From NCBI GenBank assembly GCA_038087875.1, contig CM076001.1, positions 1,798,001 through 1,862,000 on the forward strand: DNA of 64,000 bases, read 5' to 3'. The translations under genes and the position numbers were made by a program. Below, in pieces: positions 5,008 to 59,024 of this stretch (positions are counted from its first letter, which is position 1; each line of letters begins with the position of its first letter). The notes under the pieces were generated by a model. The model worked only from the letters and a program-made list of their open reading frames with translations, had not been told where the DNA came from and did not search any database. This stretch comes from Malacoraja senta. Lineage: Eukaryota.

Positions 5008-5080
5008 ATGCACGAAATTCTGATCGAGGAAAAAATAGGACTTGTGTATTATCCGATTCTGGCAGCAATCGGTATACCTG
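5008..5080 (+). pseudogene. Exon 1 of GPR139/142-like GPCR pseudogene (GPCR-1)
   Basis: ATG 5008 gives MHEILIEEKIGLVYYPILAAIGIP, then G|GTATGT donor (phase 1). This matches the YY...G.P|ANL junction of this family and joins in frame to the acceptor at 6716. Confidence 0.8.
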
Positions 5081-5164
5081 GTATGTAATTGTCGGCACAT
5101 CTCATGGAGTTTGAAAGACAGTTTGAAAAACGAGTATTATAGATTAAGAGAACATACCGAGTAG

Positions 5165-5410
5165 CCCAGCACGGGTTACGGCGGCAAGGTGGCATAGCGC
5201 TAGACCAACTGCCTGACAGTGCTTGTCTGTCCGGAGTGTGTACGTTCTCCCCGGAACCTTCTGGGTTTTCCATGATATCTTCGGTTTCTTCCCACGCTCC
5301 ATAAAAGTAAAATAAATTGTCCCTTGTGTTTGTAGGCTGGTGTTGGTGAGCGCGATCGGTGCCGATTAGGTTGGCCGGTGGTCCTGCTTTCGCGCTGTAT
5401 CCCTAAATTA
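5165..5410 (+). mobile_element. Degraded V-SINE (HE1-like)
   Basis: V-domain-like core GTACGTTCTCCCC...GGTTTCTTCCCAC, similar to the better copy at 53722. Confidence 0.6.
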
Positions 5411-5754
5411 AAATAAAATAAGCAATGCACATCTGAGGAGCGAGGAAGCACGTTGGTATATTTGATCGATGCCGTTCATTGAAGCTCGCAGAAATGTAGC
5501 CCTCACAGCTTTTTACTAAAATCAATGCCGTACTTGCGTTGTTGCGAGGTGAAGCGAAACTTCGTCCTCGCTGTGAGTGGCAGTTTTTGCTCCACTGTGC
5601 GTACTGCATTCGGCAGAACGAGAAATACACCCCGTCGAGTAATTTGGCACTGCATTTCCTGTATCGCTCTTAAATTCTCATAGGAATAATTTCGCTGGGA
5701 CAGATTTGAAGGTCGTACGTACAACCAGCTCCACAACAACCTACTCCAGTGATA

Positions 5755-5935
5755 ACAAAGAACTGGTTAACTCAGCCAGTCTTGCAGCATCTCTGGAGGA
5801 CCGACGCAGTCGACGTATGGGTTTGGGATCATTTTTCCTATCGGAGTCTGAAGAAGGGGCTCGAGCTGATACGTCGCCTATCTATGTCCTGCAGAGATAT
5901 TACTTGCGACACTGAGATACTCCTGCACTTGTTCT
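5755..5935. mobile_element. Penelope-like terminal repeat remnant
   Basis: Similar to the dispersed repeat GGAGTAACTCAGC...GCAGCATCTCTGGAG and to CTGAAGAAGGG...CGTC. Confidence 0.55.
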
Positions 5936-6716
5936 TGTCATGTGCAGTACGGAGGCCCGCCGACTGTTCGGCAGAAAATACCTGCCCGTTATGTTGTTAG
6001 CCGTGTTTGTGAAGGGTTTTGTAATTGTATTTCCTGCTCTTCACTGAATCCCTTTCCTTGGTCTCATGTTCGGAAATACATTCTCGAAGGCCAAGTGGAC
6101 AACAGACCGGATTAATCCAGACCACGATTGACTCTATGCCCCGTCGCAAACGTTCCTCACGTCGCAGCAATAAAAATGACACCGCGCATTTTAATTTACC
6201 GTTTTAGAAATGAAATCAAATATTTGATATTGGGAGGATCCCCTCTTAATTCTGATTTGATTGCTGGTAATTTGGATTGTTAATTTCATTTTTGAGATAC
6301 ACTGACTGACCTGTTGAAAATGTTCTATATTTTACATCAACATCAAACGATTGGCATAATGTTGTGAAGATTAGTACAAAAGGCAATCCCACTAATTCTG
6401 CTAAACATGATTTTAATCAGTTGCAGATTAAATTTCTGTTTACCAAAATTGGATTGCCAGTTCTACTAACATTTCCATCGTTATGGCATTCTTTTCTGCT
6501 TAAGGCAATCCCACTAATTTTGGTAATCAGGAATTTAATAAACTACTGATTGAACATCTTTCTGGCAAACGTTGGACGGATGATTGTCCCAAATATTAAT
6601 TCGTTAAATAAATAGTCTCTACTACTGGCGAGACAGGTTTACATTACTCCATCTACTCCCACCCACCAACACGTACATCAGACAATTAATCAGTTTCTGT
6701 TTTCATTTTTCCCCAG

Positions 6717-7635
6717 TGAATCTGATGGCGATTGTGATCTTGTCCCGTGGCAAGTGCGGCCTCTCCAAATGCATCACTCGTTACATGGTAGCCATGGCAA
6801 CCGCAGACCTCTCTGTGATTCTCTGTTAGGTGATATTTCACCGGATTGCCGATATTTATTGGTGGCATGCTTCGATGCTCTACACTCCCGTGTGCAAAAT
6901 AACGATCTACCTGGCATCCGTCACGGTGAATTGTTCGGTATGGTTCACAGTGGCTTTCACCTTTGATCGCTTTGTTGCAATTTCTACTCTGAAAATGAAA
7001 ACCAAATATTGGACCGAGAGAACGGCGTCGATTGTTATCCTGACAGTGATCCCACTCGTCTGCCTCAAAAACCTTCCCTTGCCCTTCGCATACGTTTCTT
7101 ACCGCGGAACCGGTGGAGAAGTGGGCTGCCTCAAACTCGTACATTTTTACATTCATCCCGAATGGATGGTGTTCTCTTGGATCGAACAGTTGTTCACCCC
7201 GGCGATTCCTTTCGCCTGATTTTGTTGCTTAACGCGCTCACCGTCAGGCGCATTTCCGTGGTCAGTCGAGTCCGCAGGAATCTCCGGGAAATCAGCGGTG
7301 GGCAGAACTAGAAAGACCAGGAGATGGTGAACCGCAGACGGTCGGTCGTTTTACTTCTGGCAATCTCGAGCTGCTTCATCCTGCTCTGGGCCACAAGTGT
7401 CGCACATTTTATTGCGGTTCGAAGTTTCAAAATGTTTATGTACAAGGCCTGGAGAAACCCTATGGTAGGGTTGGAAAAGGTCGGATTTATGCTTCAGCTG
7501 CTGAGCTCCTGCACCAACACGGCCATTTACACCGTGACACAGAGCAAGTTCAGAGAGGAGCTGTTCCGTGTGCTAACATATCCGATCATTTGCACTGGAA
7601 AGATATTTAAATCGGTAAAGTGTAAGTTAAAATAA
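6717..7635 (+). pseudogene. Exon 2 of GPR139/142-like rhodopsin GPCR pseudogene (GPCR-1)
   Basis: Acceptor TTTTTCCCCAG|TG, then NLMAIVILSRGKCGLSKC, FTFDRFVAI and SSCTNTAIY. Disabled by TAG at 6827-6829, a 1-nt deletion near 7215 and TAG at 7309-7311. Confidence 0.92.
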
Positions 7636-8704
7636 TATAACAAAAACGAGTGACCAGCTGGGCTTCACGCGTTGCTTTGCTGTACGGTTTATGTGAAAAG
7701 ACAGCATTTAATGTGTGGACATTGTACGTCCATTCGTCCTGTCGGGCACGCCCAGCTGCTAAGTAGATTCATGGGCTCAATTGAGTCTCACCTCTTGTAC
7801 GTATTTGTATGTGCTCACTTCAATCATTGAACTTCTGTTTTTCACGAATATGCCTGGAACATATTGCGTATGCATATGCCTGGAACATATTGTTTTCAAA
7901 ACGAGTGAATATGTTCAGTTAAATAAGTGCAACGTGTTGTATATCTGATTTCCTTTCATCAGTGAAAAAACGTATCATTGCTCATTAACGAGGTTTTCGG
8001 TTTAAAGAGAATCTGCTGTTTTAGCAGCGGATGAACTAGATTGTGTAAAGTTCCATACAGATACCGTGATTAAAAAACCTTCTGTATGCGGTAAATACCT
8101 ATCGATTGTAAAGCTATAGGCGAGGAGTGCCAGAAATACAAAATCATGAGAGGAATATATCGGGTAGATGCACAGATTATTTTGCCCAGAGAATAGTTAG
8201 ATTAAACGAGAATTTACCAGGTTGAAGTTTTAACTTTATTTTATGAGGTGTTACGGTTAGCGATTACGTGAAGAACCCCGTCAGTCGGCATGCGCGTCTA
8301 TCTACAAAGCAGCGGTGTGAAATCACAGATAAAACGCAACTGAAGTAACATAGTAAGAATATAAAACAGACCTTCCAGTTGACCTTTATAACATTGAGGG
8401 CCGGGAGCGGTGGGCACGTAATCGCTCATCGTAATTCCTCATAAAATAAAGATCAAACTTCAAACTGGTAAGTTCTCGTTTAATCTTACTATTTTACTTC
8501 GGAGTCACGTGAGTGATTCCGTGAAGAATTCAAAGCTCTGTGATTTCATGCCGGAGATACGAATCCAGGCTTCTCACACTGCATCAGTTGACTCAGGAGG
8601 AGTGAATAATGAGGAATACAATGAAACATGGTACAGATTAACATGTTGCTTTAATTCACAAACAAAAGAAAATACAACAACGAACCCTGTGTTACCAGAG
8701 GAAG

Positions 8705-9688
8705 CTAGGAAACAGAACTTAAAATAGAATGGGCGAACACCCCGGTTTCAACAAGTGGTTTATTGTAAAACCTTTGAAACGTCAGTTCATTTGACCCTCC
8801 TGCAGCCTCGAGGATTTGGTCTAGAGGGACGTCCATTGCCCTCGCTGCTGACGTTGATGCCGCCCTGGTGGAGTGAGATTTAAAATTGGCAGAATTAACA
8901 CCTGCAAATCCCAATACTTGTTTCAGCCATCTTGAGGTGGTCTGGACGGACACTTTCCCATGTGGCTTTTTGTGGCTTACAAACAATTGTACTTCCGATT
9001 CTCTGAGGCCCTTGGTGATCTCAATATAAGACCGTAAGTGCGCCACCACACACAGTCGTAAGTCCGTGGAATACGGTAACAGTAGAAGCTCGACTCCTGA
9101 CACCACTGGTCTGCTCTGTTTAATGAGATCATATATGTAGAATAACACGTCATTCCCAGATGACAACATCCTATCCATTCTAATTTTTTGCGGTGTCTGA
9201 ACCATCTGTGCTGACACTAACGCCATGAGCATAACCAATTTCAAGGTAATCTTTACCAAAGACAAGGATGTGGCTGGAATCCACTGTCGAGGCAGCGTGA
9301 GTACCATAGTGACATCCCAGATTTCTGTATATCTAGGCCTGGGGGGGTTGGAATTGAAAACACCCTTCATAAATCGAGGTATTAACGGATGAGATCCTAC
9401 TGACTGTAGTTGTGACCCCAAACATAAATACGACGACAGAGCACTCCTGGCAGTATTGATGGCACTATAACTTAGACCGTCAACAAAATATAATTCAGAG
9501 AGAAACTGTAACACATCTGGGATGGAAACTGTGTGGTAAGTAATGCTCCCGTTTAAGCAAAACGCCTCCCACTTCCTGATATGAGAGAGATGCTGTTTTT
9601 TTGTACTATCCCTCCAGGATGATGTGATGACATCCACGATGCGATTGGATAATCCCAGACCCAGGTATGGTCTCCTTAAAACCTGCAA
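8705..9688 (-). CDS. DIRS tyrosine recombinase ORF (open, probably catalytically dead)
   Basis: Motifs GLSYSAINTARSALS, HPLIPRFMKG, SHSTRAAS (HxxR) and TFQRFY (catalytic Y). The catalytic R position reads M (AQMVQT) and the W position reads G (AAGGS). Confidence 0.85.
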   Translation of the reverse strand: MQVLRRPYLGLGLSNRIVDVITSSWRDSTKKQHLSHIRKWEAFCLNGSITYHTVSIPDVLQFLSELYFVDGLSYSAINTARSALSSYLCLGSQLQSVGSHPLIPRFMKGVFNSNPPRPRYTEIWDVTMVLTLPRQWIPATSLSLVKITLKLVMLMALVSAQMVQTPQKIRMDRMLSSGNDVLFYIYDLIKQSRPVVSGVELLLLPYSTDLRLCVVAHLRSYIEITKGLRESEVQLFVSHKKPHGKVSVQTTSRWLKQVLGFAGVNSANFKSHSTRAASTSAARAMDVPLDQILEAAGGSNELTFQRFYNKPLVETGVFAHSILSSVS

Positions 9689-9948
9689 ATTAACAAATTA
9701 ATACGATCACACAATGGGTGTTGATCTCCAGTCACAGGGTTTACCAATAGATGATGACATTTTGGAACCACCATAATTGTCTGAGTTATAATGTCCGAAA
9801 TGAGAGGGAACCATGGCTGCGTATGCCAGTCGGGCACCACCGAAACTCCTGAAGCGGAGTCCTGCTTGATTTTAGTCAAGCGCCGACTGATGAGCCAGAA
9901 TGGAGGATATGCATATGTAAACAATCCTCTTTGTGGGGGGGGGGGCAA
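9676..9948 (-). pseudogene. DIRS DAM-like methyltransferase domain fragment
   Basis: YAYPPF...KIKQDSA...VPDWHTQPWFP, overlapping the YR start as is typical of DIRS. Confidence 0.8.
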
Positions 9949-9954
9949 TAGAAA

Positions 9955-10150: not shown

Positions 10151-10187
10151 GAGTTATGTAGGTTAAGGCACATTAATTAAGCCAGTT

Positions 10188-11498: not shown

Positions 11499-11957
11499 NN
11501 NNNNNNNNNNNNNNNNNNNNNNNNNNNNNNNNNNNNNNNNNNNNNNNNNNNNNNNNNNNNNNNNNNNNNNNNNNNNNNNNNNNNNNNNNNNNNNNNNNNN
11601 NNNNNNNNNNNNNNNNNNNNNNNNNNNNNNNNNNNNNNNNNNNNNNNNNNNNNNNNNNNNNNNNNNNNNNNNNNNNNNNNNNNNNNNNNNNNNNNNNNNN
11701 NNNNNNNNNNNNNNNNNNNNNNNNNNNNNNNNNNNNNNNNNNNNNNNNNNNNNNNNNNNNNNNNNNNNNNNNNNNNNNNNNNNNNNNNNNNNNNNNNNNN
11801 NNNNNNNNNNNNNNNNNNNNNNNNNNNNNNNNNNNNNNNNNNNNNNNNNNNNNNNNNNNNNNNNNNNNNNNNNNNNNNNNNNNNNNNNNNNNNNNNNNNN
11901 NNNNNNNNNNNNNNNNNNNNNNNNNNNNNNNNNNNNNNNNNNNNNNNNNNNNNNNNN
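11499..11957. other. Assembly gap (459 N)
   Basis: Run of N. Confidence 1.
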
Positions 11958-12255: not shown

Positions 12256-12274
12256 GATGGACATTTTATGTCGA

Positions 12275-37358: not shown

Positions 37359-37368
37359 CATGGTAGAG

Positions 37369-37657: not shown

Positions 37658-37696
37658 AACGGAGGCACGTGGTTTGGCTGTCCCTGCACAAAAACA
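37658..37696 (+). promoter_or_regulatory. Degenerate 23-RSS
   Basis: AACGGAG (essential CAC lost), 23-nt spacer, ACAAAAACA. Confidence 0.7.
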
Positions 37697-39075: not shown

Positions 39076-40199
39076 TAATATTGTGTGATGTTGTATAATA
39101 TGTTGCAATAATGTTATGCATCCATGCCTTTCGTTTACATTTAAATACTTGTTCACATTTGATGTGTGTTTACATTTAGACACTTGTTTACTCCTGTTCA
39201 ACTTACATTAGTTCATCTTCTTTGCAATTTTCCTTTTATACGCAGGGGGGATTTAACTTGTTTAAATTGTTGTGTGACAATACCTTATTATGCACTAATA
39301 TAAGGACCTCAAAATATATTGCGGTATATTGGTGTTTATATATTTTTGAAGTGGTCTTTTCATGTACATCTTTTTAGTCTACATGAGGTAATATTTCATT
39401 AAACCGATATGGGATATTCTTATTATTAGTTGTGCCTTTTATTACACATTTAGAGGTCTGTGGGAGTTATTTCTTAGGGTTGGCTTAGTTTATTCTCCGA
39501 GTTGTTGCCACGGTTATGAGGCAACACTAGTTTTCTCGTTTCTTACACTGGAGTCTCCCTTTTGGAGACTTTTCTTGGTGTGTGTGTGGGTGCTTGTGTA
39601 TGGGGGTTTGTTTATGTGTGGGCGTGGGGGTGGGGCAGACATCCTGGCTTTCTTCGGATCCATTTGCTTTCTTCATTTACATATAAATGTGTTCTGCTAA
39701 TTTGAATCCCAGCAGTCTTGGTCCTGGCACACCTATTCGTTTTCCCATTTGGAACATACGTGGTATGGCGAATCCTATTAAAAGATCCAGGGTTTTCAGT
39801 CACCTGAAAGGGCTTAACTCAGCCATAGTATTTTTGCAGGAGACTCACCTTAGACTTAAAGATCATCATAGGCTGTAGTCCTCTTGGATAGGTCAGGTCT
39901 GCCACTCCAAATTTAATTCTAAAGCACGAGGGAATTCTATTTTAAATAATAAATTAATTCAATTTTTATCTACTGATGTTATTGCTGATAAAAATTGTCG
40001 ATATCTTATAGTTACGTCCATTAATGCAAACAAAGGTGTTGTTAGTAAATGTCTATGCACCTAACTTTGATGATGCTGAATTCTCTAATAGATTACTTAG
40101 TAATATACCTCATTTAAATACCCATTTGTTAATTTTTGGAGGTGATCTGAATTGCATGTTCGACCCAAAGCTAGATCGTTCTAGTCCCCGCACGTTATC

Positions 40200-41238
40200 T
40201 AGCAATGTTACAAAATTTTGAGATTTAAAAAATAAAGTCTGCAATTTATCCCATCAGATAAAGCATAAAAAGAAGTTTAATTTGACACTGAATTCACTTT
40301 CATACCTTCAGTATTAAAAAAGTTATGGCCATTATCATACTCAGAAATTAGCATCTAGTTCCCTATTGCTTTTCCATTGACTTAACACAAAAGCTGTGAT
40401 CGAGGACAGTTAAAAGCCCATAACTTTCTTAAAAATTATGGTAACTGAAAGAAATTTTCAGGTATTATAGATTGAAGCATTCTGAAACAAATATGAAACA
40501 ATCTTACTTCGAAGACATGAAAGTAAAGCATATAATTAGTTAGGTACCTAATTGTAGCTAATTACAAAATTCAATTACTAGATCTAAACATCTATCAATT
40601 TCTTAAGAATAGATTAACATTTTTAAATAGCCTAAGTGTCCAAATAACATTCACACAATAATTCACAATATAACATAATTTTTAAATCTAATTTTCATGA
40701 ATTTACAGGCCAAATGGAAGGAATTGAATGTTTAATACCTGTAAATTAATGGGGATTTAATTCATCTTGCGAGTGAGGATTACTGGAACGCGATCTTTTG
40801 GAACGTTCATTTGCGGTGAATTTAACCCCGTATTGGCATGAAAAATACTGCCGTTAATTCGGGGAATAAAATCACCGTGTCGCATGACAAAATGTGAATT
40901 AAAGGCTTCTTAAGAAGCACTTTTATACATTTAAAGAAAGCACTTTTGTTTACCTGTCCATTGTGTGAAATCCGTCCCCGTTATTGGCGTTGACGCTTCA
41001 GGAGCTGCTTTTAAAATGACTCTAGCGCTGACATTGACGATTTAATTTTAAAAAAAAATTCACAAATCGCCGGTAGGAACGATTTTGTCAGCGAAGTTTT
41101 GTACTCCAACAAAATATTTCCAGGACAAGGGAGAAACCCGCGTTTTAACCCCGCCCCCCCCTTAAAGGCGCCAAAATCGCGCACACGGCCAGTGGCAGAA
41201 TTACAGCGCGACTGAAGGTAAGTTTTGTAACATACCTA
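40200..41238. mobile_element. Non-autonomous TIR DNA transposon (hAT-like) inside L1 ORF2
   Basis: TIRs TAGCAATGTTACAAAATT / AAGTTTTGTAACATACCTA. Flanks CGTTATC / CTTTATC. L1 coding resumes on both sides. Confidence 0.7.
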
Positions 41239-41668
41239 CTTTATCCCAATCAGCTATGTCTAAACCTTGTTCTGATTTTATGACCCAGAGTGGTATGGTT
41301 GACCCTTGGAGACTTCGTAATCCCTCACCCAAAAAGTTATCTTTCTTTTCTCAGGTTCATCAATCATATTCAAGAATAGATTATTTCTTTATAGATAATA
41401 GTCACAACTCATGTGTTGTTTCCTCGGATTATTCAAATATTCTAATATCTGATCATGCACCATTATTGCTGTGTTATCCATACAGAAATATACCCCCCCC
41501 CCCTTTGGAGTTTCAACTCATTGTTGTTGGCTGATAAAACATGTTGTGAATTTGTTACATACTCAACTGATGAGTGTTCTTCTTTAACCAGAGTTAAACT
41601 ACATCTTTTTCATTGATTTGGGAGTCGCTGAAAGCTTTTTCTAACAGGGCAGATTATTTCATATTCCT

Positions 41669-42526
41669 CGGGTATGGCTGCCCAACCTGCAACTGTCCGT
41701 CCTTTCATCTTAAAAAAAAAAAATTTAGTACGTTAAAAAGTTTCGTTTTGGAGATCTAATCTTGTTTTATGTGGGGAAGACTGCATTTCTCAGTCCCTAC
41801 CTGGTCGGAGATGCGGTATTCCTCCGAGCCGTATCTTCGACCTCTCCCCGCGGCGTACCTACGGGACTGGAGCGGCGTCTCCTGCCGGGAACGGCCGGCC
41901 AGAATTTCAGCTTCGGCGGCGGCGCAGCGCTGAAGGACCATTGCGGAACGGGCGATGCCTTACCCGGGTCGCCGTATGGTAAGCTCCGGAGTGCTGAGAC
42001 CGCCGACTCCAACATCGCGGAGCTGCGGAGTCTGCGGAGCTTCCAGTTGCGGCGGCGCTGGATTTGAACACCTTGGAGCCTGGAATCTTTCGCCAGATCG
42101 CCAGTGTCGGAGCTCCGACCAGCGCGGCCTATGGACCTCGGGAGCCGCTGTCTCGGGCAGCAAGCGGCCGTTCCAGACACTCCAAACCGCTGAAGAGTGT
42201 TCTCCCGACGTCGGAGTTCCATCTTCCGGCGAGAGGGCCTGAAAAATCGGGCCGCCCTTGCGGCGACTGCGGAGGCCTCAAATAGGCCCCGAGTACGGGT
42301 TGAACAAGAGGAAAAGGACTGGACTTTGATGCCTTCCCTCACAGTGGGAACTATTGTGGGGGGGATGCTTTTATGTTTTATGTTCAATTCTTCTTTAATA
42401 TGGTGTCTTACTTTCATGGTGTGCTGCAAATGGCAACTCAAATTTCACTACCCCAGAAATGGTGTATGTGACAATAAATGTCCTTTGTCCTTTGTCCTTT
42501 GTCCTTTGTCCTTGTCCTATTCTAAT
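41669..42526 (+). mobile_element. GC-rich non-coding retroposon with (TGTCCTT)n tail inside the L1
   Basis: Interrupts L1 ORF2 at TATTC. Homologous to 24150-24905. Confidence 0.65.
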
Positions 42527-43371
42527 TTTAAAAAACGCAATACCAGGCTTGCTGAGCTTACATCTGCTATTAATAGCCTCGATCAAGAAAGTCCATCCGA
42601 TCCTTCTCCAGAACTATTTAAGAAGCGTCTTAATCTTCAGGCGGAGTTTGATCTTATTTCATCGAGAAGTGCTGAGCGATTGTTGTTACAAATTCGTGCT
42701 ACTTATTATGAACATGGTGATAAAGCAAACCGATTACTAGCACACCAAATTAAAACGTCAGTTCACCTCACGTCTTATACCTCAAATTAATAATGTTTCT
42801 AACACGACTGATACGGATCCTGCGGCAATTAATGCCACATTTAAATCATTTTATTCTTCCCTATACAAATCAGAATTCCCTGCTGATTCCACCGAAATGA
42901 ATCAGTTCCTCGCCAATCTTGAGAATCCTACCATTGATTCTGACCGTACAAAAAAATTGTATGCTCCACTTTCCCGTGAAGAGCTACGTTTTGCAATTAC
43001 AGCAATGCAGTCTAATAAAGGCCCAGGTCCTGATGGATTTCCAATAGAGTTTCTAAAGACATTTATTGATAAATTGGCACCTCTACTTTTGTTGATGTTC
43101 AATGAATCTTTGAAAAATGGCTTGTTACCTCCCACACTGACAGAAGCTTCGATAGTTCTTCTTTTAAAGAAAGATAAATACCTCACTTCCCGTGGTTCTT
43201 ATAGACCTCTGTCTATGCTGAATGCTGATGAAAAGGTTTTGGCCAAAATCATTGCTTTCCGTCTAGAGAGGGTTTTGTCTAATATTATTTCTGAGGAACA
43301 GAATTGCTTTATTAAGGGTCGCCATTTATTTTTCAACACTCGTACACTTTTAAATATTATTCATTCAACAC

Positions 43372-43560
43372 ATTCAAGATACAAGGTACAAGATACATTT
43401 ATTTGTCACATGTACCAATTGGTACAGTGAAATGTGTGGTCACCATACAGCCATACGACTAATAAAGAGCACAGAACACGATGGTCTTTAACACACACAT
43501 CCCCACACAGCGGGATCAAAGTATTCCACTGTGAGAGAAGGCTCCAAAATTCTCATAATT
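43372..43560 (-). mobile_element. Short 3' fragment of the same retroposon superfamily inside the L1 RT
   Basis: CCTTCTCTCACAGTGGAA motif and an (ATCTTGT)-like tail. Confidence 0.55.
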
Positions 43561-45705
43561 TACCTGAGATTGTAATCTAATTAGATGCTGTGAAGGCATT
43601 CAATAGCGTTGAGTGGTGGTACCTATTCGCGGTGTTGAAGACATTTGGTTTTGGAGATAAATGTATCAGTTGGGTAAGATTCCTGTATGCATCGTCACAA
43701 GCTAATGTTCAAACAAATGATATTCGTTCTGAATACTTTGCACTAGAACGTGGGACACGTCAGGGCTGCCCTTTATCTCCATCTCTCTTCGCTTTGGCTA
43801 TTGAACCACAGGCCATTTCTTTAAGGTCCTCCACTTCCTTTAAAGGTGTTATTCGCAATCTAATGTCGTTTATCTCTGTATGCGGATGATTTGTTGCTGT
43901 ATGGAACTGATCCTGCATCTTGTCTTCCTGGTATTCTATCAATTAAGGATATTTTCGTTCTTTTTCAGGATATAAACTAATCCTTCAAAAGAGCGAATGT
44001 TACCCCATTAACGCAGCAGGTTTGCAACTTCAGGAAGCTGATTTACCATTTATAATCTCTCGTTCTGGATTCAAGTATCTTCGCATCAATGTGACGCGTA
44101 CATTCTCAGGCCTTTTGTCTGACAACTTTACCCTGCTCATGACTAAAGTGAAATCTGATTTTCAGAGATGGAATAAGCTGCCTCTCTCTTTAATTGGGAA
44201 GATTACTGTTGTTAAAATGAATGTTTTGCCTAAATGTATTTATTTGTTTCAATAAATTCCCTTATTCTTACCAAAACATATCTTTGACTCATTAGACAAA
44301 ATGATTAGCCTTTTATTTGGGGCGCGAAGCCCCCGAGGGTCCGTAAATCATTAATCCAACGAGGTAAGTTCAGTGGAGGTCTCGCTTTACCGAACTTTCA
44401 ATTCTACTACTGGGCTACTTACATTCATAAAATTCGTTGTTGGGTTGATTTTCCATATTAAGCTTGGTGCGAACTGGAAGCCCGCTCTTGCCCTCCTTCA
44501 TCTTCTATATCTGCTCTTATATATTCCTCTCTTCCAACCAAGATGTCATTGTTTATCAAAAATCCTGTTGTGCTTAATATTTTAAAGATTTGGTATCAAT
44601 TCAGGAAACATTTCAAATTTGTAGCTGCGTCTCCTTTAGGTCCAGTATGTAACAATCACCTGTTTCCTCGATCACATGTGTATTCCGTTTTTTTCGGTAT
44701 GGCATAACAAAGGTATACATTGTTTTCTTGATCTGTTTTCAGGTGGTATTTTTAACAGCTTTAACAATTTATCATCATTTTGTTGATTACCAGCAAATGA
44801 TTTTTTTAGATACTTCCAAGTTAGACACTTTGTTTCTAAATATTTTCTAAATTTCCCTCTTCACCTCCACGACACATGTGGGATAGATTGCTTATTTAAA
44901 GTTATACACAGGGTCCATTTTCCCAAATCAAGACTGTTTGGGATTTATCCAGAGGTGGAGGATAAATGTGATAGATGTTCGGGCCCACACTGTCATCTGA
45001 GCCATATGTTTTTCCTTTGTCCACGATTACATAATTTTTGGTCGAGCTACTTTATTATAATGTCTAACGTAATGGAAATACCTCTACAGCCCTGTCCATT
45101 GATTGCCATATTTAGGGCCCTGGGTGAGTCAGGTCGATTAAACTCTGTGCAATTTTTTAAAATAAATTTTACATCTTTGATAGCCAGACGTCGCCTACTC
45201 CTAGTGAAAAATCCGTAACCCACCCTCTGTGTCACAGTGGCCCAAAGATGTAATGTTTTTCCTTAAACTTGAGAAAATTAAATATACATTGAGGGGATGC
45301 ACTGATAATGTTTCTCACAAATGGCAACCTTTATTTTTTTATCATACTTTACAGACTTGCAGGTTCTGCCAGACGAAGGGCTGGTTTGTTAAATGTTGCT
45401 ATGTGTAGGTGCACTCTTCACTCTTAATTAGCCATGGTGGGATGGGTGGGGTGTGTGACTGATGATATGGTTGCATTATATATAATAATTATTTTAAATA
45501 ATTTAAAAATATATATATTTCTATTTATATGATGTTTCTGTTTATTTTTGTATTTTTCTTTTGTGTGTTATTTGAGTGTTTCTTATTAACATGCCTTTTT
45601 TTCATTTTTGTGTTGATTTATTTAAAATTAACAATTACAAAATTAAAAAAAAACACAAAAACAACCGGCGCTGTCAGAGCCGGCAGCAGCTGTAAACAGG
45701 AGAAG

Positions 45706-45744
45706 GGTTTTTGTGTGAGGACCGCCGCAGTTTCTCTCAGTGTG
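45706..45744 (-). promoter_or_regulatory. 23-RSS of the minus-strand V
   Basis: CACACTG (45744-45738), 23-nt spacer, perfect ACAAAAACC (45714-45706). Confidence 0.93.
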
Positions 45745-46179
45745 CGGATCTGTCGCGCAATAATACACCGCCGTGTCGGCGGGTTCGATGTTCTCGATGA
45801 TGAACTGGCTGCGCTTGTCAGCAGGTGAAAAATATAATTTAAAACGACCATTGATCTCTCTCCCAACCGCTCTTCGCCTGATTACCCTTTCTAGCCCTTT
45901 TCCACTTTTCTGTCTGTACCACTGCATGGAATAAATGTATTTCTCATAGGTGCAATTGATCCGCGTCGACTCTCCATTCCGGACAATAATCGCGGGCGGA
46001 ATCTGCGATATTCCTTCCAAGAGACAACGACCTACGGAAATACATAAAATGCGGTCGCGTAAGATTGCACAAGCGCAAATAAATATACGACCGTGTATTA
46101 TTTGGGAACTGCTCTGGCACTTACGTATCAGCAACGCGAGGAAGATGGAAAATAGATTCTGCTGCATTGGCGAAAACAT
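45745..46179 (-). CDS. Intact TCR alpha/delta-type V gene segment (leader 46179-46125, intron, V exon 46031-45745)
   Basis: Leader MFSPMQQNLFSIFLALLI, then a GTAAGT...CCGTAG phase-1 intron of 93 nt. V exon has ESTRINC, MQWYRQKSGKGLE, GRF and DTAVYYCATD, with no stops. Confidence 0.92.
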
Positions 46180-47151: not shown

Positions 47152-47363
47152 TGTAGATGATATGTGCATGTACCTTTAACATAGTGACCTCACCACTCCT
47201 AACCTCTCCCCACATCATCAGTATAATTACAATCTTCCCACCCAGTTCTCTCTCTGTGGTTCCAGTGACAGACCACGGACAGCTAGGGCAGAAACGTATG
47301 TGTATAATGTGTAGTATGAATAACCAGAAGTAAAGAAACAGTGCGTTATGACACATCTTTACA
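47152..47363 (+). repeat. 5' LTR
   Basis: 7 mismatches to the 3' LTR over 212 bp, counted by eye. Confidence 0.97.
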
Positions 47364-47454
47364 TGGTGTCAGCCTGGTACCTATGCGCCTCCTGTTTATC
47401 GGGTTTTCTTTCTTTTGAACCGTTTTCCTATTTTGTTCTTTTATCTCCCGTGCC

Positions 47455-48200
47455 ATGGCCACTTCTTGCCGTAAGTTCGATACGCTCGTTTTCGACTCGG
47501 ACATTGTCCATCGGTGGGGTGTCTTTAGACGTGATTTTCAACACTACGTCACGATCGCCCACGTTGCTGCCACCGCTGCTACTCAGGCTTCCCTGCTTCT
47601 CAACCTGGCTGGTCCTGATGCCCTGGAACGGGCTGAGTCGTTTGTCTATGCTGTTGGTGAAGATGCTCGGGACCCGGAATGTCTTATGGCTAAGTTTACC
47701 GCGATGTGCGACATCCCCACTAACTGTATCCTAGAGCGTTTTAAAATGTTCACCCGGCGTCAGCTCCCAGGAGAGTCAATCGGTAGCTACATCGCTGCGC
47801 TGCGTCTCCTGGCCAGGCGTTGCAGCCTGGACACGCTGACCCCCGATCAACTGACCCGGGACATTTTAGTGTATGGTCTTCAAGATTAAAAACTGAGGGC
47901 TGAACTTCTGCGGAAGCACGACCTGTCTTTAACCGATGCTCTACACGCCTCCGGCATGGCTGAGGCTGTCGCCTCGGCGGTGTCGTCTGCTGATCATGAC
48001 ATTAACTTCTCCAGTGTTGCCGGTCGCCAGCGAAACGCTGGCCCGCAACGACAACGGGGGTCCACCGCGTCAGGGGGTAGCAGCCCACAGCGGTGCCCCA
48101 ACTGCAACTTTACCCTCCACCAGTCTAATGTGTGCCCTGCACTGAGGAAAACGTCTAACTTTTTGCAGGAAATTAAACCATTTCTCTGCAACCTGTCGCT
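47455..48200 (+). pseudogene. Gypsy gag with CCHC knuckle
   Basis: ORF 47455-47889, then CPNCNFTLHQSNVC. Contains a stop and a frameshift. Confidence 0.8.
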
Positions 48201-48232
48201 CCCGTGGGAAGCCAATTGCTGCTCCTCGCCGA

Positions 48233-51200
48233 ATGTTAAACAACCTTGCTCGACCTGATAGCGCACTTGGATCAGAGTATGTCGAACTCCCTTTGTCTGA
48301 TTCGAGTTCCTCCCAGGGGGAGAACAGCATATTTTCGGTGTTGGATGCACCTGCTCTGATAACGAACCCCTCGGTTCACGTTACTCTCAACGGCTCGACC
48401 TTCACTGCCAAGCTCGACACGGGGGCTGCGACCAATGTTATGTCAATAGGCCTCTTCAAGAAGATAAGGTCTGGTGAGAAAATCACTCCCGCTCACTCCC
48501 TTTTGCATGCATATGGGGGAGCCGAGCTCGTTCCAGTGGGGAGCGCTACCCTGCACTGCAAGGTTCTGCATGCCGCTCAGCCCCTCACTTTTTAGATACT
48601 GGATACCAACGGCATCACCCTTTTGGGTGCCCAGGCGTGCCAGGACCTCGGCTTGGTCTCTTTCCACCGCGATAATAATAATAATAATAATGGATGGGAT
48701 TTATATAGCGCGTTTCTAATACTCAAGGCGCTTTACATCGCATTATTCATTCACTCCTCAGTCACACTCGGTGGTGGTGGTGAGCTACTTCTGTAGCCAC
48801 AGCTGCCCTGGGGCAGACTGACGGAAGCGTGGCTGCTAATCTGCGCCTACGGCCCCTCCGACCACCACCAATCACTCACACACATTCACACACATTCACA
48901 CGCAGGCAAAGGTGGGTGAAGTGTCTTTCCCATGGACACAACGACAGTATGCACTCCAAGCGGGATTCGAACCGGCTACCTTCCGGTTGCCAGCCGAACA
49001 CTTAGCCCATTGCGCCATCCACCAGGTGCGGACCCTTATGGACCCCCTGCACGAATACCCTGACCGTTTTGATGAAAAGCTGGGCAAGGTGCTACAAGAT
49101 CGTTGTCGACCGCGGTGTTGAACCCGTGTTCCGTCCACCACACCGCGTCTCCTTCGCCATGAAGGACAATGTGGAGTCAACGCTGCTCGACATGGTTACC
49201 ATGGGCATCCTGAAGGAGGTGAGCGAACCCACCCGGTGGGTCTCAACCATGGTTGTTGCGGCGAAAAAGGACAAGAGTGAAATTCGCATTTGCATCAACC
49301 CCAAAGACCTGAACCTTGCCATCAGACGCCCTCATTACCCCATGCGAACAGTGGAGGACGTCGCTGCGCAGGTTGGCCCGGCCACTGTCTTCTCGGTTCT
49401 CGATGCCAAGAGCTCCTTCTGGCAGATACCGCTGGAAGACTACTTGACTACCTTCGGCACACCTTTCGGCAGGTACCGATTCCTCCGCATGCCATTCGGG
49501 ATCAACTCTGCCAGCGAGGTATTCCAGCGGACGATGGAACAGCTGTTCATCGGTCTGCCGTGTGCCATCATCGTTGACGACATCCTGGTCTACGGTAAAG
49601 ACGTTGCTGAGCACGATCTCCACCTCCGTCGAGTCCTGAACCGGGCCCGCGAAATCAACCTCAAACTAAACCCAAAGAAGTGCCGGTTCCGCGTCCCGGA
49701 GGTCACCTACGTGGGCCACGTTTTTACCGCATCGGGGCTAAAGCCCGACCCGCAGAAGACAGCTGCGGTCTCCGATATGTCTTCGCCCACCGACGTGGCC
49801 AGCCTACAACGTTTCCTGGGCATGGTTAATTACTTGGGGAAGTTTATCCCCGACATCAGCGAGCTGAGCGCGCCCCTGAGGGAGTTGATCAACAAGGACA
49901 CTGCCTGGGTTTGATTCCCGCATCACCAGACAGCTTTTGACGTCCTGAAGTCCAGGCTGGCCAGTGACCCCACTCTCCAATTCTTCGATCTGCACCGCGC
50001 CATTGTTCTTACCTGCGACGCCTCCAAGTTCGGTCTTGGTGCTGCCTGTCTGCAGCTCCGCGATGGCCTGCAGCTGCCTGTTTCCTACGCGTCCCGCACC
50101 ATGACTCCTGCCGAGCAGCGCTATGCTCAGATAGAGAAGGAGCTGCTTGCTGTGGTGTTTGCCTGCTCCAAGTTCAAGGACTATATCCTGGGCAACAGTT
50201 TCACGATCGAAACCGACCATCAGCCGCTGGTCTCTATCCTCAATAAGCCCATCCACGTTGCCGCTTCCCGGTTGCAGCGCATGATGCTACAACTCCAACG
50301 CTTTACGTTTAAAATTGTGTATTGCAAGCGCAAGGACATGTTCGTGGCAGACACGCTGTCCCGCGCGCCACTAACGTCCACTGATCGCCACCCATATGAA
50401 TCATCCGACCTGATGGTGCTTAACGTCAACATCGTGCCTTCCCAGCAAATGCAGTCCCTGATCAGCAACACTGCCAAGGACCCTGCCCTGCAGCAGCTTG
50501 CCGACGTCATCAGGCAGGGTTGGCCAGAGTGTCGTTCATCCTTACCGCCTGGAGTCGTGCCCTACTTCCTGGTCCGTGACGAGCTCGTGCTGCACGACGG
50601 CGTGGTCGTGAAGGGACACAAGGTGGTTGTGTCTGCTGCCCCGCGGGAACAATACTTTCATACCGCCCACGGCGGTCATCCTGGGGCCGATGCCACCCTG
50701 TCTCAGGCCCAGAGTTTGTTCTACTGGCCCGGCATGGCCCAAGACATCCGGGAGAGGGTCACCGCTTGCTCTGTCTGCAATAGCCTCGCTCCCCATCAGC
50801 AACGGCAGCCGCTTCTGCAACAGCCTGCCCCCGAGCTGCCCTGGATGACCGTCGCCGCTGACATTTTTGAGTGGCGTGGAAAGCATTTCCTGGTTCTTGT
50901 GGGCTCATACTACAGCTGGTTCGAGGTGGACCAGCTGCACTCCCTAACCTCTTCGGCCGTTATCGGCAAGCTGCGCCGCCACTTCGGAACCCATGGCACC
51001 CCGGCAAGTCTTCAAGCGGACAACGGCGGCCAGTTCTCGAGCGCAGAATTTCGGAGTTTCGCTGCCAGTTGGAACTTCGGACACTACACCAACAGCCCGG
51101 AGTACCCACAAAGCAACGGATTGGCGGAGCGCGCTGTCCGCAGTGCTAAGGACTTGCTGGAACATTGTAGACTGTCCCATTCTGATTTTTACTTGGCCCT

Positions 51201-51855
51201 CCTCAATCTTCGCAACATTTGCCGCGACACTGCCTTGGGCTCTCCAGCTCAACGGCTGATGTCTCGCACTACGAGACGTCCGATCCCGGTGACCCAGCGT
51301 TCCCTCGTTCACTCTGTCCTCCGTCCCGCTGCCGTCCAGGAGCGCATTGCCCTCAAACAAGAAATCCAACGGCGCTCCCACGACAAATCTTGTCGTCCTC
51401 TCCCGCATCCGCTCCCAGGCCAAGTCGTCCGAATGCAATCCCCCTCCGGTCACCCCAGGCTTGCCATCGTCGTCGGTACTGCTGGATCGCCGCGGTCCTA
51501 CCTTGTCGACCATGACGGTACCATTTACCGCCGGTCCCGGCAGCATCTGCGGCTTGTTAACGAGCCACCACCGCCGCCTGCGGATCCTCCCCCCCCCCTC
51601 ATTGTCGACAACACTGCCTGCCCCTCCGGCCATTCCTCCCTCGCCTGCCCGTCTTCCCGCTACTGCTCCTGCTTCCCCTGCACCTTCTCCGTTTTCTCGT
51701 TCTCCTCCCGGTTCCCCGGTCTCTCCCCCGCGCCGGCTCCTGCTCATGCTCCGCCTGCAGAAGGGGGGGGGATGGCGAAATGCGTACCCGGTACGCGCAG
51801 GTGCTCAGCCCGCCTATCCGTTATCGTGAATTTGTTTAACTGTTTGCTCACCTGA
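48233..51855 (+). pseudogene. Gypsy pol (PR, RT, RNase H, integrase), interrupted
   Basis: KLDTGA, LDAKSSFWQ, IVDDILV, CDASKFGLG, EKELLAV, H..H...C..C, ADNG and SNGLAE motifs. Interrupted by a SINE insertion, a frameshift near 49090 and TGA at 49912. Confidence 0.92.
48674..49017 (-). mobile_element. tRNA-derived SINE with (ATT)n tail nested in Gypsy pol
   Basis: A box TGGCGCAATGG (49017-49007), B box GGTTCGAATCCC (48973-48962) and an L2-like tail GTAAAGCGCCTTGAG...GCGCTATATAAAT. Confidence 0.88.
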
Positions 51856-51920
51856 TCGTAGCGTATGAGACGTGGTCGCCCTGTCACTTCGGTATTGCTT
51901 ATTATTTCCAAGGGGAAGGA

Positions 51921-52132
51921 TGTAGATGATATGTGCATGTACCTTTAACATAGTGACCTCACCACTACTAACCACTCCCCACATCATCAGTATAATTACA
52001 ACCTTCCCACCCAGTTCTCTCTCTCTGGTGCCAGTGACAGACCACGGACAGCTAGGGCAGAAACGTATGTGTATAATGTGTAATATGAATAATCAGAAGT
52101 AAAGAAACAGTGCGTTATGACACATCTTTACA
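51921..52132 (+). repeat. 3' LTR
   Basis: Direct repeat of 47152-47363. Confidence 0.97.
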
Positions 52133-54385: not shown

Positions 54386-54455
54386 ATGCACGCGCCTGGG
54401 AACGGCCCGGTCTTTGCAGTTTACTATTCCGCTCTTGCAGCTTTCGGTGTTCCAG
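54386..54455 (+). CDS. Exon 1 of GPCR-3
   Basis: MHAPGNGPVFAVYYSALAAFGVP + G|GTAAC. Paralogous to GPCR-2 exon 1. Confidence 0.9.
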
Positions 54456-54789: not shown

Positions 54790-56305
54790 AAGCAGCCAGG
54801 GTAACCGTCGAGGAAGTACTGAAGGTACTGTCGTGTTTGAACGTAGACAAATCCCCGGGGCCTGATCCGAGGACATTGCGAGAAACTAGAGAGGAAACTG
54901 CGGGAGCCCTGGTTGAAATTTATGAATCGTCCTTAAATACAGGAGAGGTTCCAGAGGATTGGAGGGTGGCAAATGTTGTGCTTCTTTTCAAGAAGGGCTG
55001 CAAGGAAAATTTTGGGAACTATAGGCCGGTGAGCTTAACATCTGTAGTTGGTAAGTTACTAGTGAGTATTCCGTGGGATATGATAGACAGGCATTTGGAT
55101 GGGCGAGGGCTGATTCGGGACTGTGAGCATGGATTTGTACGTGGGAGGTTCTCTCTAGCAAATCTGATTGAGCTTTTTGAAGAAGTGAGGAAAAAGGATG
55201 TTGAAGGCAGAAGTGTAGATGTCGTGTACAAGGACTTTAGTGAGGCGTTCGACAAGGTGCCGCGTGGTAGGCTGCTCTGGAAGGTCAGATCTCATGGGAT
55301 CCAAGGAGAGATATCTGAATGGATCGCAAATTGGCTCCATGGGAGGAAGCAGAGGGTGATGGTTGAAGGTTGCTTCTCAGAATAGAGGCCTGTGACTAGT
55401 GGTGTGCCACAGGGTGCGGTGCTGGGCCCGTTACTGTTAGTCATCTACATCAATGATTCGGATGAGAACATACAGGGCAGGATTAGGAAGTTAATGAAGA
55501 TGGTTGGGAACGATGGCAGCAGGATTTGGATCGATTGGCCAGGTGGTCTGTGGAATTGTTGATGCAATGTAATACAGAGAAGTGTGATGTTTTACATTTT
55601 TGGATGTCGAACAAGGGTAGGACCTACACAGTAAATTATAGGTTGGGTAGTGTTATAGAGCAGAGGGATCAAGGAGTACAAGTGCATGCTTCAAAGAAGA
55701 TCGAGTCGCAGGTCGATAATGTGGTCAAAAAGGCTTTTGGCCTTCATCAGTCAGAGTATTGAATATAGAAGTTGGTATGTCATGTTGCACTTGTATAAGT
55801 CGTTGGTGGACCGCATTTAGAATATTGTGTTCAGTTCTGGGCACCATGTTATAGGAAGTATATTGTAAAGCTTGAAAGGGTTCAGAAAGGATTTACGAGG
55901 ATATTGCCAGGCTGGGTCTCTATTCCATGGAGCGTAGGACGATGAGGGTAGATGTTATAGAGGTATACAAAATCATGAGAGGAATAGATCTTTACCCAGA
56001 GTAGGGGAATCGAGCACCAGAGGACATAGGTTCAAGATGGGGGAAAGGTTTAATAGGAATCCGAGAGGCAACTTTTGCACACAGAGGGGGATGGGTGTAT
56101 GGAACAAGCTGCCAGAGGAGGTACTTGAGGCTTGGACAACCTCATCTCTTAAGGTACTGTTCGACAGGTACATGGACAGGACAGGTTTGGAGGATTATGG
56201 GCCAAGCGCAATCAAGTGGGACTAGGTTTGCTGGACATTGTTGGCTAGTGCGGGCGAGTTGGGCCGAAGTGCCTGATTCCACACTGTATGACTCTATGAC
56301 TCTAT
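54790..56305 (+). mobile_element. CR1-clade LINE (second family) in the GPCR-3 intron
   Basis: VDKSPGPD...NYRPVSLTS...DFSEAFDKV, with a (CTATGACT) tail. Confidence 0.88.
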
Positions 56306-57622
56306 GACCACGCCGATTTCCTCGCAATCTACTCTCCGCGCATCAGCTACCACCCGAGCGCAGCATTTGTCTAATAACCTGCTTGTATTTCTATAACGGT
56401 ATATATCCTGTCACATTAATTAATTGGAGTGCATTTTTAATCGGACTACCTTTGATCGGACATTATTGCACTTTATATTGCACTAACCGTTATGCTCTTC
56501 GTGTGGCTGCACTTCGTGAACGGCTTGATTGCAATCATGTTTAGTATTTCCGCTGATGCCATATCGCGTAATAAAAAAAACATTTTCACTTTACCTCGTT
56601 ACATGTGGTAGTAAACTAAACTAAACTATACTAAAACCTAAACGAAACTAAAACTACAATAGCACAAAGCATTGCGAATTAAACCAGTAATTTCTCTTTC
56701 CTGGATTAGATCGATTTTTGTTGTGGTTACACCTCCAGAAGGGCTCCCTGAGGTAGTGTCCCGCTTTGCAACTTTTAATATATGCATTCATCATTGCGTT
56801 TTGGCAATGACATGTAATAAATAAATTAAGCATAATATCGAACCATAAATGCAAAGATATTAAACCAATAACCGACTCTAACATTATTTATCCTTACTTG
56901 TATATGCGTGCTTGTCTTTCCGGTTCCCATTCCTCAGGTCTTTCCTGATTGAAGACATTTTGTATTAATTATATTTCATTGTTGATACTCAGACCCATAA
57001 TGCTGCCGCTGATGTTCTGCAATAATTGGTTACCATGATAATGTATTTCCGTTCTTATCAGCGTGTGACAGTAAAGGTTGAAGGCAGTGAGACAGAAAAA
57101 TAACTATTTTTTGAAGCTATTGTATGAGATTCAACGTTCTTGTGCTCGTATACAATTGCATCGTGCACCGAGCGCAATTATTCAGTGCCTTTCGTGCTTC
57201 TATATTTCTGTATTTGCTGAGTACTGAGCGATCTGTCATTTCTTCAGACGATAATGTTGCACTGGGATATTCCGCTTGGCTTTGGTTAAATGATTCCATA
57301 GATACAGTGCATGTTTCATGTTCGTTCCCCGTGTCCACTCATCACTCTTCCGCATAACTAGGCATAGCAAATGCGGAAGAATGTTCAACATTTATTACGT
57401 TTGCAAATCCTACTGACCTTCCACGAGAACTAATGCCACTGCAATCAATCACGTGATCTCCTGTGATCTGTTGTGCCCTTTCAGATTATTCGCTTCACAA
57501 TACCATTGATGTGCAGCCGCATCGTGTCGTTTAAATGCTACTATGAGTGGTTCTGTCAACTTTATAAACTTGAAGTTAATTCGCAGACGTTTATAACTCT
57601 CGCCAGGTTTATTGCCATTATT

Positions 57623-57728
57623 AGACACAAAATGCTGGAGTAACTCAGCGGGACAGGCAGCATATCTGGAATTCCTTCTCGCCAGAGATGCTGCCTGTCC
57701 CGCAGAGTTACTCCAGCATGTTGTGTCT
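57623..57728. repeat. 47-bp inverted repeat with a 12-nt loop (PLE terminal-repeat derived)
   Basis: Arms 57623-57669 and 57682-57728 differ at 3 positions. Confidence 0.9.
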
Positions 57729-58044
57729 TCCTTCGGTTTCAACCAGCATCTGCAATTCCTTCCTGCACATTATTGTCAATATTGTTCGTTTTGAAATTCC
57801 ACGCCTTAATTTTTGTTTATGCCTTATTTATTTCTCCCTGTTATTTAAGTGTCATTTTAACGTTTAGATTGATCTGCAATGATCTGCGAAATGTAACAAA
57901 CGTCCGTCGTTAAACTGATGTGTTTCAATCGCGGTGTCAACAGTGAAGGATACGCATGCATAGTCGCCTTCCAAACACGTTGATGTAACAGGCAGATGAT
58001 TTTTTTCGTTATGGATTTTCTATCTCTCCATCTCTCTCACACAG

Positions 58045-59024
58045 CGAACGCGTTGACCATTGTGATCCTGGCGCAAGGACGATGCGGCCTCGCGAAGTGT
58101 ATCACCCGCTACCTTGTGTTCATGGCGGTGACGGATCTCCTCGTTATTATCACCGCAGTGATACTGAGTCGGCTACGTGCTATTTATTTCCCTGTTAGTT
58201 TTTTGTCCACCATTCCCGCCTGCAAACTTATTATTCTCCTCAGCTGGGCATCCAAGGACGCGTCTGTTTGGTTGACCGTCGCCTTCACCTTCGATCGATT
58301 CATAGCCATTTGCTGTCACCGACAGAAGCTCAGATTTTGCACGGAGAAAACCGCGGCTGTCGTTATTGGAAGTGTCTGTGCGGTGGGTTGTTTTAAAAAT
58401 GTCCCTTCTTACTTTATATACGAGCCAGTGTACGTGGTAGATAACGTGCCCTGGTTCTGCACGATAAACGAAATGTACTATTCTTCCATTGCATGGAGGG
58501 TTTATGACTGGCTGCACCGGATGTTAAACCCATGTGTCCCGTTCCTTCTCATTTTTCTACTCAATGTTCTGACGGTCAGATACATCCTAACGGCGAATAA
58601 AGCCCGCAGGAGGCTCCGGGCCCAAAGCAATGGGGACCGACAGAATGACACGGAGATGGAGAACAGGAGAAAGTCTATCATTTTACTCATGGCGATATCG
58701 GGTAGTTTTCTCCTGTTGCGATTGACGTATGTCGTGAATTTTCTATTTGTGCAACTGACCAGCAATAAGTATGCCAGCGGCTCCAATTCCGCTGACCCAA
58801 AGTTTATCCTACAGGAAAGCGGATACATGCTGGAGCTTCTCAGTTCTTGTACCAACTCGTGCATTTACGCGGGGACGCAGATTAAGTTCAGAAGACAGTT
58901 GAAGGGCGCTGTTAAATTCCCATTCAAACTAATTAAAGCATGGTTCAAAACTTACGCATTACCGATAGTTTCCGTCTTATATTCCACGACTGAAAATTAT
59001 AAAGTTGATATGATTTTGAAATAG
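58045..59024 (+). CDS. Exon 2 of intact GPR139/142-like rhodopsin GPCR (GPCR-3, 349 aa spliced)
   Basis: Acceptor CTCTCTCACACAG|CG, then an open 7TM frame with NALTIVILA, FTFDRFIAIC and SSCTNSCIY. Confidence 0.93.

Follow-up and report, generated by a model that had tools for sequence, protein, structure and literature searches.

A GPR139-like receptor lineage interleaved with T-cell receptor alpha/delta-type V segments in skates and sawfish

Antigen-receptor loci are usually drawn as pure arrays of variable (V), diversity (D), joining (J) and constant (C) genes. A 64-kb stretch of the genome of the skate Malacoraja senta (contig CM076001.1, positions 1,798,001 to 1,862,000; here termed the window, whose coordinates are used throughout) contains V segments of a T-cell receptor (TCR) type lying among genes for G protein-coupled receptors (GPCRs), raising the question of whether this arrangement is real and, if so, what holds the two kinds of gene together. 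The interleaving was found to be real and to be conserved across skates and sawfish. The explanation that we favor, with a probability of roughly 0.7, is that a lineage of elasmobranch class-A orphan GPCRs is embedded in the V array of the TCR alpha/delta (TRA/TRD) locus and has undergone birth and death jointly with it, forming a genomic neighborhood and not a functional unit.

The window contains three GPCR genes, G1, G2 and G3, and three V segments, of which two are termed V1 and V2. Their parts are listed below in order of position, with the strand and, in parentheses, the basis of the assignment; TM denotes a transmembrane helix, 7TM the seven-helix domain and RSS a recombination signal sequence.

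5008-5080, plus strand: G1 exon 1, diverged, with the start codon as well as the first half of TM1 (exon-1 peptide used in tblastn, GT donor read)
6717-7638, plus strand: G1 exon 2, a pseudogene carrying two internal stop codons plus a frameshift at ∼7189-7213 (tblastn; Pfam 7tm_1)
21977-21067, minus strand: G2 exon 2, the remaining 7TM and the stop codon (Pfam 7tm_1, E 1e-15; splice model)
25382-25313, minus strand: G2 exon 1, 70 nt, from the ATG to the GT donor (exon-1 search, splice model)
33293-33335, plus strand: leader of a decayed VNAR-like V (frame reading)
∼33479-33740, plus strand: body of the decayed VNAR-like V, with stops and frameshifts (frame reading; PDB VNAR matches)
Up to 33835, plus strand: weak J-like tail with neither RSS nor donor (frame reading)
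37367-37655, plus strand: V1, a leaderless V exon of the "supporting V" type behind an AG acceptor (Pfam V-set, E 1.4e-5)
37688-37696, plus strand: nonamer-like part of the V1 RSS remnant, which has AACGGAG in the place of the heptamer (sequence reading)
46179-46125, minus strand: V2 leader exon (sequence reading)
46031-45745, minus strand: V2 V exon (Pfam V-set, E 8e-12)
45744-45706, minus strand: V2 RSS, with heptamer CACACTG at 45744-45738, a 23-nt spacer and nonamer ACAAAAACC at 45714-45706 (RSS scan)
54386-54455, plus strand: G3 exon 1, 70 nt (exon-1 search, splice model)
58045-59024, plus strand: G3 exon 2, the remaining 7TM and the stop codon (Pfam 7tm_1, E 2.5e-16; splice model)

The GPCR genes are built on a plan of a short first exon holding the start codon and half of TM1, a phase-1 GT donor, an intron of 1.6 to 3.6 kb (3.3 to 3.6 kb in G2 and G3) and a single large exon. 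G2 and G3 have intact, in-frame coding sequences of 326 and 349 amino acids, respectively, and canonical splice sites; their Pfam 7tm_1 scores of 58.4 and 60.4 bits, relative to a curated cut-off of 30.5, identify both as class-A receptors, and one piece of G1 exon 2 matches the same domain at E 4e-6. The identity between G2 and G3 (70% for protein and 76% for DNA) is confined to exon 2. The original prediction of three paralogous two-exon GPCR genes was right in the count, the strands, the decay of G1 and the intactness of G2 and G3, but G1 is no close paralogue, being only ∼41% identical to either of the others and falling in a separate deep lineage of the tree. The gene models also bear out the claim that G2 and G3 are transcribed away from the V block. 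The C-terminal tail of G3 (58950-59024) is ∼24 residues longer than that of G2 and most relatives, a feature shared by the orthologue in the skate L. erinacea.

The V segments are in differing states of preservation. V2 has every structural feature of a V segment, namely, a split leader, an intron, a V-set domain with the Cys-Trp-Cys triad and a 7-23-9 RSS, and on this reading of its sequence looks functional. V1 has AACGGAG standing 23 nt ahead of a good nonamer. RAG cleavage needs the leading CAC of the heptamer; hence, the RSS of V1 is dead and V1 would not be cuttable. For the third V, the top PDB matches were all VNAR domains, with an E value of 0.012 at best over a 34-residue match, and the pieces gave no Pfam match. 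A scan of the window for D or J RSSs detected only that of V2 and one weak site at chance level, and a perfect-consensus RSS pattern had no match in the window. As neither an RSS nor a splice donor follows the VNAR-like V, the J is at best a decayed remnant. Of the predicted three V segments and a J, the V segments were thus recovered, one intact, one leaderless with a dead RSS and one frameshifted, while the J was not confirmed.

The nearest single-domain PDB matches of V1, V2 and the V segments found in the skate A. radiata (see below) were TCR alpha V domains, although V2 is also VH-like. These matches uphold the central claim that a class-A GPCR family other than the olfactory receptors stands among TCR alpha/delta-type V segments. 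The VNAR-like leader and V body lie ∼3.5 kb upstream of V1, itself leaderless and preceded by an acceptor, and this arrangement may correspond to the NAR-TCR cassette of elasmobranch TCR delta, in which a VNAR-type V with D/J elements precedes a leaderless supporting V. The version in the window differs in being decayed, with stops and frameshifts in the VNAR-like V, no D or J RSS found and the heptamer of the supporting V lost.

Ten GPCR loci outside the window were examined with 10-kb flanks. A homologue search detected an L. erinacea protein 93% identical to G3, and the corresponding locus (L005; 24 kb without N) is colinear with window positions 42595 to 63998 at 87 to 94% identity. This locus holds the 3′ part of an L1 element, the orthologue of V2 with its RSS and the GPCR. 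The orthologues of V2 and G3 stand head-to-head in gap-free sequence. Two further V segments with 23-spacer RSSs are located just downstream of this GPCR. The exon 2 regions were better conserved than their flanks in the colinearity comparison. Window positions 30601 to 4841 are similarly colinear with A. radiata CM021380.1 at 59.26 Mb (locus L006), which contains a G2 orthologue (P0039) with 96% protein identity. The very divergent G1-type lineage adjoins the G2 orthologue in both skates (window 5008-7638 and A. radiata L006). G1 and the two A. radiata copies (L006 15646-16599 and 19686-20642) are all pseudogenes, and an alignment indicated that their lesions differ, which suggests recent parallel decay. 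At 58.78 Mb, ∼0.5 Mb from the G2 orthologue, a second A. radiata locus (L001) contains two TCR-alpha-type V segments head-to-head with a GPCR of the family; these V segments have CACACTG-23-nonamer RSSs, and another GPCR lies just beyond. This second GPCR had been a candidate for the G2 orthologue, but BLAST identified it as a different copy, the orthologue being that of L006.

The arrangement extends to the sawfish Pristis pectinata. Between 55.25 and 55.39 Mb of CM019866.1, three GPCRs each have a V segment with a 23-spacer RSS within 2 to 7 kb, and one is flanked by V segments on both sides. Unrelated intact genes are thus present between V segments in the window, L. erinacea, A. radiata and Pristis pectinata. 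No V segment was detected within 10 kb of the GPCRs at A. radiata L007 and L010 (P0004 and P0109; 52.6 Mb) or of zebra shark P0019. In the clade defined below, seven of seven loci had a V segment within 10 kb, compared to zero of three outside it, a count which is descriptive only, as the loci are not independent. The sister of this clade, a distant family member and the single shark relative lacked a V at this distance. A homologue search with the V2 exon scored no candidate, and the protein collection evidently contains no V segments. In one sawfish locus (L002 2505-2835; ∼55.255 Mb), the V segment is clearly of VH type, with a canonical RSS of CACAGTG-23-ACAAAAACT, and a GPR139-like gene follows 7 kb downstream; this V may be a TCR-associated immunoglobulin-like V or mark the edge of an immunoglobulin heavy-chain cluster.

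A tree of the GPCRs (43 rows, LG+C20 model) placed all V-adjacent members in one 16-row batoid clade of skates and sawfish, with support of 99/91. The sister group, supported at 100/97, comprises four batoid rows, among them the A. radiata genes at 52.6 Mb that have no V nearby, and a 5-row shark clade branches outside both. G1 and the two A. radiata L006 copies group on a long branch of their own. The V-linked clade contains at least three orthology groups in which skate and sawfish sequences are intermingled, indicating that the lineage had multiplied before the two orders split. This split dates to the order of 200 million years ago.

Rates of nonsynonymous and synonymous substitution (dN and dS) were compared between orthologues. 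The dN/dS ratio was 0.096 for G2 and its A. radiata orthologue (dS, 0.19) and 0.22 for G3 and its L. erinacea orthologue (dS, 0.14), indicating that G2 and G3 are maintained genes under purifying selection and not recent passengers. The same comparison for V2 and its L. erinacea orthologue gave a dN/dS ratio of 0.43 (dS, 0.21). Between G2 and G3 the ratio was 0.175 with a dS of ∼1.0, the latter value indicating an old duplication.

Co-duplication of GPCR and V units had been proposed as one source of the interleaving. A self-BLAST of the window detected no repeated unit of V plus GPCR: G2 and G3 share only exon 2 (76%), the other repeats were long interspersed nuclear element (LINE) and long terminal repeat (LTR) copies, and the V segments adjoining G2 and G3 differ in type. 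In the sawfish, loci L008 and L009 are colinear through a V segment (70% identity), GPCR exon 1 (73%) and GPCR exon 2 (77%), and the alignment of a second L008 GPCR with the L009 gene extends beyond 3.5 kb, taking in the intron as well as DNA upstream. These sequence comparisons indicate that duplication of a V-plus-GPCR unit has occurred in the sawfish and is old. The proposal therefore applies to the sawfish unit and to the multiplication of one batoid clade within the array, but not to a duplicated block inside the window.

At an E value of ≤1e-3, the only PDB sequence match was human GPR139 (G3, E 3e-10; G2, E 6e-7; PDB 7VUG and 9M42). The nearest Atlas clusters bear the name "probable GPR139," although database names are automatic. 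The homologues numbered more than 1,295; among these, the best 120 listed were from elasmobranchs wherever the source named one, and nearly all were called "probable GPR139." An AlphaFold model of P0002, a V-adjacent member from A. radiata, had a pLDDT of 80 and a pTM of 0.79 and exhibited seven long helices plus a C-terminal helix. All 50 PDB matches listed in a fold search with this model were class-A GPCRs; many peptide-type class-A receptors matched equally well, with GPR139 being fifth and having the highest identity among the top matches, at 23%. The fold search with the P0002 model hence did not single GPR139 out from among the peptide-type class-A receptors. The earlier label of GPR139/142-like is accurate in that GPR139 is the closest known receptor by sequence but, given the 23% identity of the fold match, is a nearest-neighbor label only.

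Several features distinguish these receptors from GPR139 despite the shared class-A 7TM fold. GPR139 is a single conserved vertebrate gene, whereas there are hundreds of elasmobranch-only paralogues here. The N terminus of the G2/G3 family is very short, and the canonical micro-switches D/ERY, CWxP and NPxxY are replaced: DRF and N(T/S)CIY are present, and TM6 has F-x3-R/K-x-T for F-x3-W-x-P (helix numbering was deduced from motif spacing). These changes are variants and do not represent a loss of the fold. The TM6 Trp (6.48 by motif spacing) is present in 97 of 128 aligned family members. In the main V-embedded subclade, however, this position is Arg or Lys in 13 of 13 sequences (Lys in one), the motif of G2 and G3 being LLLR(F/L)T. 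Outside this subclade, an Arg was found at the position in one sequence and a Tyr in a horn-shark subgroup.

Genes unrelated to immunity are already known from the interior of mammalian TCR loci. In humans, the olfactory receptor (OR) genes OR10G2 and OR4E2 are located between TRAV1-1, TRAV1-2 and TRAV2 (PMC4574546), and OR genes occur with conserved synteny among the first TRAV segments of humans, mice (Olfr1507-1509) and sheep (PMC4574546). The parallel drawn originally with OR genes interspersed in the 5′ TRAV region is therefore sound. Both systems have class-A GPCR genes unrelated to immunity between alpha/delta V segments, with synteny across species. They differ in the family, which is OR in mammals and nearest to GPR139 in skates; in extent, with two to three genes at the 5′ edge in mammals compared to many copies over at least 0.1 to 0.5 Mb here; and in history, as the batoid copies multiplied inside the array and were seen in batoids but not at the one shark locus. 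A second parallel is provided by the trypsinogen genes nested in TRB (8 in humans, 20 in mice and 5 in cattle; PMC2685407), another unrelated multigene family within a TCR locus with lineage-variable duplication and old conserved synteny (PMC2685407). The differences here are in the locus (TRB versus TRA/TRD), the products (secreted proteases versus membrane receptors) and the taxa. The interleaving is best read as being of the same kind as these two mammalian cases, with the family, the higher and more widely spread copy number and the taxa being new. The literature searched yielded no paper on this GPCR family, which has hundreds of genes per genome, or on GPCRs in an elasmobranch TCR locus.

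The favored explanation is, then, that one GPCR lineage entered the TCR alpha/delta V array before the divergence of skates and sawfish. The embedding would have arisen once, probably from a cluster of the family ∼6 Mb away on the same chromosome. Thereafter, the GPCRs would have multiplied and decayed with the V segments, as segmental duplication presumably copies whatever sits between V segments. G2 and G3 are independent, selectively kept transcription units, each with its own ATG in a 70-nt exon 1, and G1 is a dead member of a second, far more divergent lineage at the same place. The interleaving would then be an effect of genomic neighborhood, of the kind known for the mammalian OR and trypsinogen genes. 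During V(D)J recombination, the DNA between the V used and its D or J target is deleted or inverted on that allele. If the window is in cis with D, J and C genes, any GPCR standing between the V undergoing rearrangement and the segment that it joins would, as a by-product, be cut out or inverted in the T cell concerned.

Several results weigh against this explanation. The genomic context is limited to the ten loci and their 10-kb flanks, and no C, D or J gene was detected within the window or these flanks. None of the outside sequences fetched crosses the gap at 31869-32119, which is located between G2 exon 1 and the VNAR-like remnant; the distance of 7.9 kb from G2 to the nearest V therefore rests on the scaffold. 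The shark evidence consists of one locus, zebra shark P0019, and as this has no V within 10 kb, the layout may be batoid specific rather than chondrichthyan-wide. In sequencing runs containing G3, introns and intergenic DNA were at the same depth as exons and no exon 1-exon 2 joint was present; this even depth indicates that the runs behave as genomic DNA. Two runs from related species contained only copies 5 to 6% diverged. Lastly, the location itself may offer some benefit that has helped to retain intact GPCRs within the array since skates and sawfish separated.

Such a benefit is the substance of an alternative that we regard as unlikely, namely, that the two kinds of gene are functionally or regulatorily coupled, the GPCRs using the chromatin of the V array or their promoters acting as regulatory or boundary elements for V usage. 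Variants of this proposal include stochastic or monoallelic activation, expression in thymocytes or T cells, and recombination-dependent loss. It draws on the purifying selection that has kept intact copies within the array in both skates and sawfish, on the few kilobases at which GPCR first exons face V leaders in skates and on the derived Arg or Lys at the TM6 Trp position, which is common to the main V-embedded subclade and suggests a functional shift after embedding. However, neither orientation nor spacing is conserved: V segments and GPCRs are head-to-head in skates and in tandem in sawfish, at distances of 2 to 8 kb, which makes a shared (bidirectional) promoter unlikely. Every GPCR is provided with a first exon and a start codon of its own, and the OR and trypsinogen cases demonstrate that nesting needs no coupling. 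A more specific form, and a long shot, is that the TM6-Arg/Lys clade has stayed in the alpha/delta V array since before the split because its expression depends on the locus; this dependence would take the form of, for example, thymocyte or T-cell expression or a stochastic choice of one gene arising from V-array chromatin. If this were true, T cells would become mosaic, through V(D)J deletion, in the receptors that they can still express. As it stands, the association looks like two gene families duplicating on shared ground more than like a working link between GPCR and V.

It is very unlikely that the window represents a misjoined, chimeric scaffold or an orphon, the latter being a scattered block of dead V segments remote from the working TCR locus. 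There are three N gaps (3685-3884, 11499-11957 and 31869-32119), two of the three V segments are dead, the content of transposable elements (TEs) is heavy, the L. erinacea counterpart is an unplaced scaffold of 208 kb and a C gene is lacking from the window and 10-kb flanks, all of which such an origin would accommodate. No gap, however, touches any exon or intron of a GPCR or V segment in the window. The gap at 11499-11957 lies within LINE debris between G1 and G2, and the join across it is supported by gap-free A. radiata L006, in which G1-type copies come after the G2 orthologue and the convergent order is the same. Gap-free colinearity was observed with the assemblies of two other skates, the intact V2 is conserved, and GPCRs are interleaved with intact V segments with 23-spacer RSSs in chromosome-level sequence over at least 0.5 Mb in A. 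radiata and at least 0.12 Mb in sawfish, both stretches being near the end of the chromosome record. With the G3-V2 pairing colinear in L. erinacea and G1-G2 in A. radiata, the layout is real. Least likely of all is that the GPCR copies are decaying, nonfunctional passengers copied along with V segments and heading for loss, for although G1 and its two A. radiata counterparts are all pseudogenes, with lesions that differ, and sawfish L008b and a copy in L009 carry stops, the complete reading frames and canonical splice sites of G2 and G3, the better conservation of exon 2 regions than of flanks and, above all, the cross-species dN/dS ratios of 0.10 to 0.22 refute this for G2 and G3.

If the embedding of a GPCR lineage in the V array is accepted, skates and sawfish would provide a second, independent case of nested GPCR genes, in which a different family has multiplied within a TRA/TRD V array and is under selection. 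The exceptions known so far, namely, the OR genes of TRA and the trypsinogen genes of TRB, serve as synteny anchors and as natural tests of the reach of locus-wide chromatin control. The V-embedded GPCRs could similarly be used as a datable marker for the growth of the batoid locus and would constitute a clean system for asking what lymphocytes do with genes that lie within a recombining array, be it silencing, co-activation or deletion. Annotators should also be warned that "GPR139" models in such regions may have TE or V exons fused to them. In the public model for the G3 orthologue, L. erinacea P0001 (L005 10001-14257), the end of TM1 is swapped for LINE-looking residues, reading ...VVVYNDFSKAFDK..., which is probably an annotation artifact of an intronic TE.

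LINE and LTR debris is abundant throughout the window, and two insertions separate V1 from V2 and V2 from G3, as follows.

37703-45653, plus strand: L1-type LINE of ∼8 kb between V1 and V2 (reverse transcriptase [RVT_1] open reading frames)
37687-37702 and 45654-45669: 16-bp perfect target-site duplication around the L1 (sequence reading)
47152-52132, plus strand: gypsy-type LTR retrotransposon between V2 and G3 (self-BLAST; RVT_1, RNase H and integrase domains)

The target-site duplication of the L1 takes in the nonamer-like motif of V1. As the 3′ part of this element is at the same place in L. erinacea, the insertion is older than the split of the two skates. The gypsy-type element has LTRs with 96.7% identity and long gag/pol reading frames; the orthologous L. 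erinacea site is without it, indicating a lineage-specific and fairly young insertion. Before the L1 insertion, V1 (plus strand) and V2 (minus strand) stood tail to tail with their RSS nonamers ∼42 bp apart (37655-37702 and 45670-45745), an unusually tight convergent V pair. Between G1 and G2, an open reading frame of 327 amino acids (8705-9948, minus strand) has a weak match (E 2.4e-4) to the N-terminal SAM-like domain of phage integrases and may belong to a tyrosine-recombinase element of the DIRS or Crypton type.

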